From Hypanus sabinus (lineage: Eukaryota): a stretch of DNA of 64,000 bases. The stretch lies in the NCBI RefSeq assembly GCF_030144855.1, contig NC_082728.1:32798001-32862000 (forward strand), read 5' to 3'. A program made the position numbers and the translations under genes. Below the pieces are notes generated by a model, which was not told the origin of the DNA, did no database searches, and worked only from the letters and a program-made list of their open reading frames with translations. How positions within the stretch are numbered: the first letter of the stretch is position 1; each line of letters opens with the position of its first letter. Shown here piece by piece: positions 49,750-54,445 of this stretch.

Positions 49750-50944
49750 TAGTGGTCACCAACCTTTTTAAGGCCAAGATCCCCTACCTGGGCCTTAGTA
49801 AAAGGCAAGATTTACCCCAGAGCAATTAGTTACACGCATGCGCACCAGGGCAGAAAAGACCGGAAGTAAAACCCTGCAACCCAGATGTAGAAATAATGTA
49901 TAAACACCAGGGGTACCCACACTTCTTTTGCAATGCGGACCAATTTAATATTGACAATATTCTTGCAGGCTGGCTGACGGGTGTGGGGGGTGTTAAACAT
50001 GATGGGAATACAGCGATACTAAAAGCAGGTTCCTTATGTCCAGTCTATTCCGCAATTTAGTTTTTGCGGCTCTCGTCACTGAGCTTCTGTCCCGTGCTGC
50101 TCACGTTTTTTTCTGCTGAATAATCTCAACGTGTTTGTCATTAAGTGCTGGGTGCTTAGACTCAGGGTACTGAAGCAGCCTTGAGGGCTTCATTGCCTCA
50201 TTGGACAGCTCCCCGGGTCTGAGCTCCAGCCCCTCGCCCGCCCGCTGCCAGATGCCTTGGCCATTTGCAGCTGGTTATGGATCGGGTGAGAGGACAAGGT
50301 TAGGGCTGGAGGTCCCCGTGCCAGGGCTACGCCGCTCGCAGTCCGGAAAGAGCGACCGACCGAGCGAGGAGTGCGACAGGACGCACGCCCGCCCCCCTTG
50401 TAGGATCTAATGGCCGATAAAAGTTTGCTTCAGTAGAGCGCAGCAAAGTAGTTGCACTGATACTTAAGAAACGATGAGCCTGAATTAGGCCATTTGCAAA
50501 TATTTTCGCACCGGATTCCCCATGAACGTACGGTGTGGTAAACAGGTTCAGAGACAGTGCTCCAGGCCAGTAGCGATCGCACTTCCCGCCAGCCGCCCAA
50601 GGCCAGCCAATGATCCCTGGTGCGAGGGTATCACTATGTTTAGGCAACTGATGCCCTTGCGTCGGTTCAAGTTCAACAGTGGCTGTTACAGGGAATGAGG
50701 TAAGGTGCAGCTGAATCCTATCACTTCCTCACGGCCCACTGGTTGGGGAACACTGAAGTACACTGTGTAATGTGGAGGAGCTACACGCTTGCGCACTGGG
50801 CAGAAAGAACGGAACTAAAACCCCGCAACCCGGAAACAATCTATCAACAGTATTTGTGTGTGTATTTTTCATTTTTTTTGGGATCTACTCAGAAAGTCTC
50901 AAAGATAAACTAGTGGATCGTGATCAATGGCTTGGCGAACACTA
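49750..50944. mobile_element. hAT-Charlie non-autonomous element nested in the hAT, with CpG-rich interior
   Basis: TIRs TAGTGGTCACCAACC / GCTTGGCGAACACTA; perfect 8-bp TSD ACCTAAAC (49742-49749, 50945-50952). Confidence 0.88.
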
Positions 50945-51777
50945 ACCTAAACAGTTTCTCAGCTTGCTTTTGTGTTGATTCATTAGGCTAGAACCTCGCT
51001 CACAGTCTGCACTAGATGCAAGAAAGGTTTCCCCATCAACTGTGCAAGATTGCAAAACTCTTCATTTTGAAGTACAAATGGCAGCATTTGGGCAAAGTTT
51101 GAAATCAGTTTGAATTTAATTTTTTCTTGCATGGGAAATTTGAAATCATTAAACTGTCTAACTATTACAGTATTTTCAGCTAGAAAATCATGATATTTTG
51201 GACATAAGGCATTAACTTGTTCATCATCACGTGAAGAAACAATCTGCAATTGCTCAGAAATCAGAAGCTGACCATTCTTGTACCTCAACTTCAGGAAACC
51301 TTTCTTCTAAATGAACACAAAGAATATTTATAAAGTCAACAGCGAACTTGTATCTACTGTGACATTTTCTTCAAGTTGTTGGCTTAGCAAAGCTTTAACT
51401 TTGTCACTCCAGGAAACATTGTCTCCCAGGTACTGCTTTCTTACCTTGTTAATTTTGTCTGGTACAAAATGAAGTGAATGAATCGGTGTCAGGCCACTCT
51501 TTGCAGAATCTTGCACGGTGCAGCCAGTTCATCAAAGACATCACTTAAAAGCTGTAAATCTACTTTGCATGTGATGTTTATCAATTTCTTGTGACAGTAT
51601 TTAGCCACAGGTCATTTGACTGATCTTCTTCAAAGTATGTGATCAGTGCCTCATAATTTTTTACTATTGCCTGCAATGCAAAGTTTCTAGATAACCATCT
51701 GACTTCATAAAGTGATCTGAAAGCAACAGCTTCATTTTCATAGGCCTCTGCAATTTCTTTAAATTTGCATCTTTTTT

Positions 51778-52301
51778 GTGTTCATCCATCGTCGGCGTCG
51801 ATGAGACTAGCGTGTGATTTGGATTTAAGTGAGGGAGAGTTGCACAGCGTCAGCCTCACTCTCTCCTCCCAATTCCCATCTGGATCCAGTGGCAAGACAA
51901 GAGTCGAGACAGGCGGAGCTGGGTCTAGGCACAGTGGATGACCAGGACGTCTTCTGTGTCTTGTTCTGCGCTACACAATCCATGATGCTTGCAGAGACCG
52001 CCATCTTGACCGTTGGACCTTCCAATGGTCTCATCTGTTCAATCTGCCAGAGTCTGTCTTCACATGCTGGGATAGACAACTCCCTATCTCACCGAGGGTT
52101 TGGGACCTGTCAGCTACCCTCACCTGGTTAGCCGGCTGGTCGAAGCTGTTGCCCGGGGTGTGGCCACTGTCACTTGCAAACAGCTACGGGGAGCCACAGG
52201 TGAGAGCTGAGTGCCAGGTGGGGACCAAAGGTGGACAAACCACCTTGAAAAGGACGTGACATGTTCCCCCACCAGAGGTGCTACCCCTCCCTGACACCCC
52301 A
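51778..52301 (-). mobile_element. ~520-bp non-coding retroposon (probably an RTE-derived internally deleted element) inserted in the hAT transposase ORF
   Basis: The transposase frame ...RPAVKRC / KRCKFKEIAE is duplicated across the insert (TSD AAAAGGTGTA / AAAAGATGCA). The 3' end is GATGGATGA microsatellite-like; the 5' end is an HDV-like ribozyme fold. RTE affinity is from memory, not from a search. Confidence 0.75.
52119..52300 (-). ncRNA. HDV-like self-cleaving ribozyme (predicted)
   Basis: P1 GGGGUGU/ACACCCC (7/7); P2 CUCACCUG/CAGGUGAG (8/8); P3 GGC/GCC; L3 UCCCCGUA; P1.1 CC/GG; GCAAC after P1.1 as in genomic HDV; P4 CAGCU/AGCCG; J4/2 GGCUAA with C75 equivalent at 52131. Confidence 0.78.
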
Positions 52302-54445
52302 TACACCTTTTAACTGCAGGTCGAGAAAGCACTGTATAGACTGTTCTCATCAAGGTTTCAATGTCTCCAACTTGACTTCTTTCCAAGCATCACAAATCCC
52401 CAGATCTTCACGGTGTGCTAGACAGTGTTGCTCAACTAAATGTGGAATGTCCTGTTTAAGTCTTGCTGCAACATCATTAACTCTGCCCAACATTACTGAT
52501 GCTCCATCAGATGTAAACATCACCATTTTATGGACGTCAAGTCTCTTCTCTTCATAAAACAGCTTGATCACTGAAACAAACGAAAAAGCATCACGCGCCT
52601 ACAGCTGAACGATTCTGTCAAAAAACGTTTTATAAACAGTACAATCTTTAGATCTGAATTTGAAGTACAGAATGAGACATTTGTTGAAAGAAAGGCCTGT
52701 GTTTTCATCAATTGCTAACGTGTGAAAATCTGCTGATGCTATTTCTTCAAACATGTCTTTCTGAACAATGTAGTTGATAGTCTCCAGGAATTTGAATGCA
52801 TAATTTATGCTTCGCCAGCTGTCTGGGAGTTGAACATACTTTTCTATATGTTCATTAATGTGTTGAACTGAATGTAAAGAGTTATTCATTTTAACAGCTA
52901 ACAACACACTGTCGATAAGAAATTTGATCTCTGGGTTTGATCATTTTTGCTCTTTGCTCATCTGCACTCAACCGTAACATGCGCAGCACTCCTGTGATGG
53001 GGGATAATGGGTTCTGTTGCCTGAGCTTTTGTACATCGTCCAAGTGTGATTTACTTGCCAAATGACGCTTGAAAAAGTCAAGTGTCCAAATATCATCCCG
53101 CCTCTTTCCACCAGCAAATTCTTCAGCAACTTTCACATCATGACAATACAAACAGATAACTCCAGTTTCCGAATCATACGTAAAATTTCTCACAGCTGAC
53201 GTTCATGACCACATGAGCTTTCAGTGTAGCAGTTTCTACTATTAAGCCATTCAACTTTAAACAAATTTGCAGTTCTTTTGCACTTCAAGCCTTTTGTTTC
53301 TTTTGAATTCAACATAGTGAATCAATATTGTTTTCAATTAAAACTTAGTAAGCTATCTACAGGATTTGAGACATATCTTTGTAAACTTTACGATATGAAC
53401 ACTGCCCACCAAAGGCGGCTGTCATCTGGATACATCTGTACAAACCGGAAGAGGAAAGGTGAGGTGACATAAATGCGTGACGTGCATTGTGGTATTTGAA
53501 AAACCGACTAACTAGTTAACAGAAACATTTAGCTATAAGATTCTTTTCAATAAGTATAATTATTAATTACTACATTATATTAGGAAACTAACCTTTTGTG
53601 CGCACATTGATTTCCTTTGTGTGCTGATTGAAAAACGTGCATGCGTGCATACACAAGCACAGATTAGAGGGAACATAGCCCTTGTGGAAAGCTCTTGATT
53701 CATTTGCTGGAGAGCATATGTAGCTCTAGCTCACTAAGAGTTGTATGGTGTAGGAATTTTAACACACATTGTTCTCTGTGGGGTTTTTCCACAGAATGAT
53801 GGTAATGGTTTGATTGTAGAAGAATTTTTAGGTATTTCACATCTTCTGTGTCTTAATGATGGGAAGGGCAAAAGACTTCATGTTCATTATAGTTCTGAAA
53901 CTGCTACAGATTTAACCTTAGTTTCGAACATTCTGGCTGGAGTGAGTGAGTGGGATGTCATGGGAGATGAAACATTGGGCAGTGATTATTTTCCGATATT
54001 TATAAGTTTGGGTGTGGATTTCTATAGGGGACAGGAGGTCACTTTTAGGAAGTGGAATTTTGGAAAAGCAAATTGGGAGAGGTTTAAGGTTTTATGTGAT
54101 GAACATCTGTCAGGGCTGAATGTTGTAGGTGATGTGGATTTCTGCAATGAAAGGTTTTGTCACATTATTCATCAATATGCTGTGGAAGTGATGCCTATTA
54201 AAAAGGGCATTAATAGTAGAAGAGCTGTACCATGATGGACTTGGGAATGTGCAGAGGCAATGAGGGAGAGAAATGAGGCATTTAGGAAAATTAAGTATCA
54301 CTCTTTGAGTGATGTTATTAAATATAAAAGGGCACAGGCCGTGGTAAGCAAAGTAGTGAAGGTGCTAAAAAGGTTTACTGCAGGTCATACTGTGATAGTA
54401 TTGGAAGGGATATTAAACTTGGAGATATTTGGAGAATATTTAAAA

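Follow-up and report, generated by a model that had tools for sequence, protein, structure and literature searches.

A putative HDV-like ribozyme with an additional hairpin beside L3 heads a short retroposon derived from an RTE-like LINE

The insertion in the window and its LINE parent

The stretch of Hypanus sabinus DNA analysed here (the window; 64,000 nucleotides of contig NC_082728.1, positions 32,798,001 to 32,862,000) carries on its minus strand a decayed hAT-type transposase gene (52303-52571 and 51560-51766) that hosts a short retroposon. Judged from sequence, the region 52119-52300 is very probably the head of this retroposon, a decayed non-autonomous element of 527 nt bearing a hepatitis delta virus (HDV)-like ribozyme, which would have arisen by internal deletion from a parent of ~4.05 kb, an RTE-like long interspersed nuclear element (LINE). 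A first-pass annotation had already read the region as an HDV-like ribozyme heading a small retroposon of the non-LTR type (LTR, long terminal repeat), a reading supported by the covariation among 12 sequences and by the LINE parent described below, and all motifs listed in that annotation were found again at their minus-strand coordinates (Table 1). The family would represent a new structural variant of HDV-like ribozymes: its L3 holds an additional, conserved hairpin, its P1 strand occurs twice, and it heads an RTE-like LINE as well as the short, abundant element derived from that LINE.

Table 1. Features of the retroposon copy in the window, in 5' to 3' order of the element (TSD, target-site duplication).
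Feature	Position	Strand	Remarks
TSD, 5' copy AAAAGGTGT	52311-52303	-	empty-site contig, hAT frame
GGGGUGU	52300-52294	-	called P1 5' strand in the first-pass annotation
J1/2, 98 nt, one long rod	52205..52302	-	rod predicted in five lineages
J1/2 base helix, GGGUGUCAGG with CCUGGCACUC	52299-52290 with 52218-52209	-	four double compensatory changes in L009
P2 5' strand CUCACCUG	52204-52197	-	8/8 P2 pairs with double-sided changes, 12 sequences
P3 5' strand GGC	52195-52193	-	pairs with 52164-52162; 2/3 pairs covary once canonical relatives are added
L3 core UCCCCGUA	52192-52185	-	U, CC (P1.1 partners), G
20-nt insert beside L3	52184-52165	-	
Hairpin P3.1 (stem 52184-52179 with 52171-52166, loop 52178-52172)	52166..52184	-	G52165 joins hairpin to P3 3' strand
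P3 3' strand GCC	52164-52162	-	
P1 3' strand ACACCCC	52161-52155	-	covaries with upstream 7-mer: L004 (U-A), L009 (A-U)
GG of P1.1	52154-52153	-	plus start of J1.1/4 (52149..52154); no family variant of at least 8%
GCAAC	52152-52148	-	C52148 is the first P4 base
P4	52148-52133	-	2 mismatches private to window copy (A52147, C52138); 4/5 pairs covary across lineages
J4/2 GGCUAAC with putative catalytic-C equivalent C52131	within 52119..52132	-	G-C-N-A-A in 12/12 sequences
P2 3' strand CAGGUGAG	52126-52119	-	
Rest of element body, homologous to LINE 5' UTR 3' of the ribozyme	51805..52118	-	blastn
3' tail, homologue of the final ~28 nt of the LINE before (AAC)n	51776..51804	-	local alignment
TSD, 3' copy AAAAGATGC	51775-51767	-	empty-site contig, hAT frame

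The ends of the copy were given by a contig of run X5 with single-copy-like depth (58.8), which follows the upstream flank to 52303 and continues at 51766, skipping 536 nt, and thus represents the empty site. Without these 536 nt the flanks read as one continuous hAT-transposase frame (...LSRPAVKRC followed by KFKEIAEAYENEAVAFRSLYEVRWLSRNF...), and the insertion therefore spans 52302-51767, one TSD copy counted, with the 527 nt as the element proper. The TSD (AAAAGRTGY; Table 1) does not hold G52300, which the first-pass annotation had placed within it. The final GGTGT of its 5' copy is identical to bases 3-7 of the family 5' end, and the junction is therefore a 5-nt microhomology at which the copy lacks at least the first two family bases; joining by chance microhomology has been proposed for R2 5' junctions (PMC3774820). 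A reading of the flank as ...VKRCMDEHKKD..., with a 4-bp or 'ATG' TSD, was ruled out by the continuous frame of the empty-site contig (...VKRC/KFKEIAEAY...EVRWLSR), and a phmmer search with the 41-aa open reading frame (ORF) 3' of the element, which lies in the wrong frame, gave no match. In the host gene, the frame without the insertion (...LSRPAVKRC/KFKEIAEAY...EVRWLSRNFALQAIVKNYEAL) meets stops further out on both sides; its downstream part is repeated (depth 900-1,800 in run X5) and its upstream part looks single-copy.

Translation in the frame of the ribozyme matched four proteins, three of them on long contigs of one assembly (loci L001, L002 and L003). In all three the same head lies ~800 nt upstream of an ORF of 1069-1076 aa, split in two in L002, with Exo_endo_phos and RVT_1 domains; in the 1076-aa ORF these occupy 14-240 and 562-829, and it is a single ORF with no ORF1. 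The three LINE copies are ~99.3% identical over ~4.05 kb, the ORF stops ~40 nt before a tail ending in (AAC)n, and in L001 an 11-bp TSD (ATGTGTCATGT) adjoins the first G of GGGGTGT. The window element shows 74-75% identity (blastn) to the first ~500 nt of the LINE 5' untranslated region (UTR), and its last 29 nt (51804-51776) match the last ~28 nt of the LINE (21 of 26 positions identical to L001, L003 and L084 by local alignment). From the 5' UTR match together with the shared tail it follows that the window element is a non-autonomous internal-deletion derivative. With a single ORF for apurinic endonuclease (APE) and reverse transcriptase (RT), without ORF1, and with a minute 3' UTR followed by a trinucleotide-repeat tail, the LINE is RTE-like and would fit the RTE clade; a 3' UTR that is very short and closes with short tandem repeats was reportedly described by Malik and Eickbush in 1998 as an RTE hallmark.

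The C-terminus of the LINE ORF (L001:13960-14046) carries a classical C2H2-type zinc-finger pattern, C-x2-C-x3-F-x5-L-x2-H-x3-H, which is conserved in 27 aligned relatives and received no Pfam call. The surroundings of the LINE copies (L001:1-9600, L002:1-8400, L003:1-9400 and 14000-20288) are crowded with further fragments of reverse-transcriptase genes; among these is a second full-length APE+RT ORF, which lies in L002 (5391-8390) and runs on the opposite strand. One copy ends in (TGT)n-GTCGAC (L002:14099-14120), the reverse complement of the family's own tail, and the copy in L009 is preceded by AAACAACA (L009:100-113); LINEs of the parent type may integrate within each other's (AAC)n tails.

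A protein search with the LINE ORF returned 1,801 relatives, and an alignment of 27 of these was used to scan metagenome contigs, yielding 80 loci, to which look-ups added L084-L088 and L245-L249. Among them, heads carrying the insert were identified by a covariance model in the window, L001-L003, L004, L009, L084 and L245. The same model also found heads that lack the insert, in L006, L015, L027, L074/L078, L080 and L046; these are HDV-like ribozymes of the ordinary kind (in L027, GCC-UCCUCGU-GGC-CACACAU-GG...GGCUAAA), and an HDV descriptor of our own added canonical heads in L008 and L030. The covariance model found no match in L085-L088, L246-L249 or most of the metagenome loci. The LINE relatives L085-L088 share 69-79% protein identity with the parent and have its UTR in common from ~215 onward; their first 200-350 nt (L085:1-290, L086:1-310, L087:1-350, L088:1-290) are unrelated to the parent head and matched neither the covariance model nor Rfam; the head module has been swapped.

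The abundance of the short derivative was assessed on Logan contigs of four runs from four organisms, aligned to 51700-52400 of the window and, in a second alignment, to 52100-52345. Between 3,619 and 9,444 contigs matched per run, depth was high only over ~51803-52307, and the second alignment agreed; within the 64-kb window no second copy of the element was found. On viral and prokaryotic collections an 18-letter pattern (15 fixed bases) gave chance matches only, and a LINE-protein scan of viral contigs gave no match.

Ribozyme core, covariation and the P1 register

The order of the strands in Table 1 is that of an HDV-like core. In the window copy the U, CC and G of L3 are taken here to be the equivalents of HDV U20, C21, C22 and G25, and the GG with the start of J1.1/4 and C52148 spells GGGCAAC, presumably as in HDV. 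The nested double pseudoknot (P1, P2, P3, P3', P1', P4, P2') was found by our descriptor in the window, L001-L003, L009 and L084, and P1.1, which two L3 cytosines would form with the GG after P1, is present and invariant in all sequences, where it can give no covariation signal. A 3-bp P3 closed by a 7-8-nt L3, as in L006, L027, L046, L008 and L030, is not found in the window copy: U, CC and G are kept, but L3 is open to a 19-20-nt hairpin plus a G. The minimum-energy fold of the region is ordinary for its composition (z = -1.6), a plain fold being unable to represent the pseudoknot.

In the family majority the window copy's letters are replaced by G at 52147, A at 52138, C at 52166, C at 52172 and U at 52174. 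The first two of these make P4 a perfect 6-bp helix (CGGCUU-CGAC-AAGCCG), and the CpG decay that the first-pass annotation had suspected in P4 is borne out by the G that most family copies have at 52147. No family variant of at least 8% was seen at the P1 3' strand, the GG, GCAAC, both P2 strands, P3, the L3 letters UCC and GUA, the insert's 5' strand or C52131; the middle two bases of L3 are AA, not CC, in 12-85% of the depth.

The covariance model, which was built from four insert-type cores and spans P2, P3, the insert helix and P4, was used to align 12 sequences. Standard pairs fill 96.3% of the cells of this alignment, compared with 73% in shuffles and 20-42% with slid partners. Double-sided changes occur at 15 of the 21 pairs (P2 8/8, P3 2/3, P4 4/5, insert helix 1/5), a number reached by none of 500 shuffles. 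Given the size of this effect, and since hand checks on MAFFT alignments agree, we regard the fold as secure. P1 and P2 covariation across copies, which had been set beforehand as one of the checks on which the ribozyme reading could fail, is thus present, P1 covarying with a strand other than the one first proposed.

That strand is a second 7-mer. The 5' end of the family reads GGGGTGT-AT-GGGGTGT, and contigs of the four runs continue to 52307 and then 'GG'; loose ends at 52307 followed by 'CC' (plus strand) amount to 75-186 contigs per DNA run. Two tandem 7-mers are found in every lineage that reaches the 5' end: GGGGTGT-AC-GGGGTGT in L084, GGGGTGT-CA-GGGGTGT in L003, GGGGTGT-A-GGGGTGT in L245, GTGGTGT-AT-GGGTATT in L004 and AGGGTGT-AGGGTGG in L009. 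L004 has ACACCAC and L009 has ACACCCT as P1 3' strand, and in both this strand pairs fully only with the upstream 7-mer, by compensatory changes. The strand at 52300-52294, which the first-pass annotation had assigned to P1, is accordingly the 5' strand of the J1/2 base helix, the true P1 strand of the family being the duplicate 9 nt further upstream, and the element does not start exactly at G52300 as that annotation had it. Because P1 covaries with the upstream 7-mer, the predicted cleavage site of the family is 5' of the upstream G, the family's own first base. In the family a P1 of 6-7 bp starts at this base; in the window copy the remnant of the P1 5' strand is aaGGUGU (52309-52303), with 5 of 7 pairs, and as the first two P1 bases are missing, no cleavage of this copy is expected in the register of the family.

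The downstream 7-mer together with CAGG pairs with CCUGGCACUC directly 5' of P2. This helix, with its compensatory changes, and the rod predicted in five lineages support the structured J1/2 that had been proposed, and by analogy the helix would be a 'P1.2'-type clamp; P1.2-type J1/2 helices activate large HDV-like ribozymes (PMC4908430).

It could still be argued that the register first proposed is the working one, with P1 at 52300-52294, a cut 5' of G52300 and the upstream 7-mer as junk from integration. The downstream 7-mer is indeed perfectly complementary to the P1 3' strand in the window copy, L084, L003 and L245, and L001 and L002 begin exactly at it, the L001 TSD adjoining it. However, as a P1 strand it would mispair at 4 of 7 positions in L004 and 1 of 7 in L009, where the upstream 7-mer is perfect and covarying, its pairing with the 3' end of J1/2 is marked by four double changes, and most family copies in the four runs reach the upstream 7-mer, all of which makes this alternative unlikely. 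In L001 the partner of the downstream 7-mer at the end of J1/2 (ACACCC) nearly repeats the P1 3' strand. The starts of L001 and L002 are either 9-nt truncations or occasional uses of the downstream register, which may therefore be a minor alternative.

With the upstream 7-mer as P1, the ribozyme would act as follows. The element of an active master copy would be transcribed inside a longer RNA, the head would fold into the double pseudoknot, and the C equivalent to HDV C75 (52131 here) would cut directly 5' of the first P1 G, leaving an RNA whose 5' end is exactly the element's first base. By target-primed reverse transcription the LINE protein would then copy this RNA, starting from the 3' tail that the two elements share. 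Two features set the molecule apart from the textbook fold: a hairpin of 6-8 bp, P3.1, which follows the eighth L3 nucleotide and precedes the P3 3' strand, making L3 an internal loop rather than a closed one; and the tandem doubling of the P1 5' strand, the upstream copy forming P1 and the downstream copy the base of the ~100-nt J1/2 rod.

The hairpin beside L3

P3.1 is present in the window copy, the family majority, L001-L003, L084, L004, L009 and L245. In six lineages the insert segment folds by itself as a 6-bp hairpin (-4.6 to -5.7 kcal/mol), and the hairpin together with GGC/GCC is the minimum-energy fold of the P3-L3 segment. Its positions are 100% paired across lineages: pair 1 is G-C or G.U, pair 3 U-A or U.G, pair 5 U-A in four sequences, U.G in L004 and C-G in L245 (one double compensatory change, U-A to C-G), and pair 6 U.G, U-A or A-U. 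The loop varies in sequence and by 2 nt in length, and no change disrupts pairing. The first-pass annotation had left room for the insert being decay private to one copy; its presence in six lineages and in the family majority makes it a family feature, and the helix it described on the 3' side of L3 is conserved across these lineages.

At the core of the loop L001, L084, L245 and the family majority have GCAUGC, and L004 has ACAUGU; both are self-complementary, and the outer pair switches from G...C to A...U between them, whereas L009 does not fit. The core might form a CAUG tetraloop with its closing pair, or it might be a site of loop-loop dimerisation. Pairing of the hairpin loop with the tip of J1/2, considered by eye, fits L084 and fails in L003 and L004.

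Following the eighth L3 base, the hairpin occupies what we take to be the position of HDV C26-U27. U27 of HDV can be deleted without loss, and because of its location at this dispensable base the hairpin may be read as a tolerated and selected peripheral prop of the 3-bp P3. A bolder proposal is that it forms a new functional domain of the HDV fold, serving folding, speed or binding of the LINE protein, and that the tandem P1 strands, with their matching 3' partners, allow the RNA to use either of two cleavage registers, so accounting for copies that start at one or the other 7-mer; we consider this a possible, though on the whole doubtful, extension.

The hairpin might also be a neutral passenger, a single insertion at a solvent-exposed site of L3 that has been kept by block inheritance or head exchange. 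Its 5' strand GCUG is invariant and transitions make up most of the changes; heads have been swapped among close LINE relatives, L085-L088 having a common UTR and a different head; and in the LINE protein tree insert-type heads are scattered, occurring in both halves of a well-supported 27-member clade among canonical and unrelated heads. Against this, pairing is retained at all variable positions, including the change from U-A to C-G, and despite the 2-nt change in loop length, and the hairpin persists at 53% protein identity (L009 compared with L001) while most other UTR sequence is unalignable, only the ribozyme core and the part beside the ORF start aligning between the two. A passenger is therefore likewise possible but doubtful. 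The distribution over the tree suggests that the insert-type head is either old and selected, or that heads move between lineages.

The first-pass annotation had further raised two switchable P3 registers: GGC would pair with GCC while the hairpin is folded, or with GCU while the 20 nt loop out at the P3-P1 junction. The ribozyme would then be a regulated one. Both partners exist, GCU being the first three bases of the hairpin, removal of 20 nt in either frame yields a canonical P3-L3, and L006 pairs AGC with GCU. GCU and GCC are both invariant, so that they do not discriminate, but the hairpin, which excludes GGC/GCU, is kept in all six lineages and belongs to the predicted minimum-energy fold, and no ligand or partner is evident; a switch of this kind is very unlikely.

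Weight of the reading and relation to known ribozymes

Several observations weigh against the reading of the element as headed by an HDV-like ribozyme with a conserved hairpin and an RTE-like parent. With E-values up to 10, the Rfam HDV-type models gave no match in 50000-54000 of the window, nor in L027, L080, L046, L006 or L084. The covariation alignment was fitted to the structure of the model, which favours pairing, and P1.1, as well as P3 among insert-type sequences, is invariant. The hairpin has a single double change and otherwise mostly transitions opposite G or U, which cannot break pairs, making the evidence for it thinner than for the other helices. The upstream P1 register is not universal, L001 and L002 beginning at the downstream 7-mer, and the placement of the LINE in RTE comes from its architecture.

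The lack of Rfam matches, which at gathering score extends to 20 loci, would also suit a fold that is not catalytic, with an internal promoter setting the element's 5' end and the conserved structure serving only translation or protein binding; L1Tc has a promoter and a ribozyme within the same 77 nt (PMC3383444). However, all active-site hallmarks of HDV-like ribozymes are kept and invariant (U..CC..G in L3, GG, G-C-N-A-A in J4/2 and G at +1), and all four helices covary, so that such a non-catalytic role is highly improbable. Since canonical relatives fail as well, the Rfam HDV models are too narrow to decide the matter.

As presumably in genomic HDV, the family has U-C-C-x-x-G in L3, GGGCAAC after P1 and G-C-x-A-A with the catalytic C in J4/2. 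It presumably differs in that P1 closes with G-C, not G.U, in most lineages, that J1/2 is ~100 nt long rather than 3 nt, and that the 19-20-nt hairpin replaces the C26-U27 position.

HDV-like ribozymes process the RNAs of R2, RTE, baggins and L1Tc (PMC6765202, PMC3774820), and ribozyme-headed non-LTR elements with non-autonomous derivatives are already established (PMC6765202, PMC3774820, PMC3414825, PMC3185411), so that a ribozyme defining the 5' end of a LINE is known biology. With the 5' ribozymes of these elements (drz-Agam-2 type) the family shares the strand order P1-J1/2-P2-P3-L3-P3'-P1'-P1.1-P4-J4/2-P2', the active-site letters, the placement at nucleotide 1 of the element and a large J1/2 with a base helix resembling the P1.2 'pinch' (PMC4908430, PMC3774820, PMC6765202). 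It differs from them in the extra hairpin between L3 and the P3 3' strand, L3 being an internal loop with 8 nt facing 1 nt and not a closed loop of 7-8 nt, and in the tandem duplication of the P1 5' strand, one copy of which would serve the J1/2 base helix. Like the short internally deleted elements (SIDEs) of R2 and NARTc of L1Tc, the derivative has retained the 5' ribozyme and the 3' end of its parent and lost the ORF (PMC3414825, PMC3383444); here, in contrast, the parent is an RTE-like LINE that is not site-specific, the whole ~500-nt proximal UTR is retained, and the derivative reaches thousands of contigs per run in several organisms.

In the part of the literature that was searched, the variable parts described are J1/2, P4 and J1/4, plus the L3 spacing in one wasp R2; neither a helix inside an HDV-like L3 nor a link of HDV-like ribozymes to shark retroposons was found described there. 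The HDV-like core is very tight, with J1/2 and P4 as the known room for variation, and genome searches rest on that assumption. A conserved L3 helix on an active-looking LINE and an abundant derivative would demonstrate that an extra domain can be accommodated in the catalytic loop or put to use by it, offering a natural test case for stabilisation of P3/L3 and arguing for broader search descriptors. Were the hairpin a functional domain, descriptor and covariance-model searches that fix L3 at 7-8 nt would have overlooked an entire branch of the HDV-like ribozymes, one that is very abundant in the genomes of animals. The duplicated P1 strand, in turn, would be a simple system for alternative registers and the choice of 5' end in retrotransposition.

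A second family, ~10 times deeper, was seen in organisms A and C; it has in common with the window only the 44-nt piece 52190-52233 (the end of J1/2, P2, P3 and the start of L3). Beyond this piece its consensus, which is of low agreement (0.5), reads L3 UCCAAGUA followed by a putative hairpin of similar kind, GCUGUUUGCAUGGGACAG, and the flanks differ.

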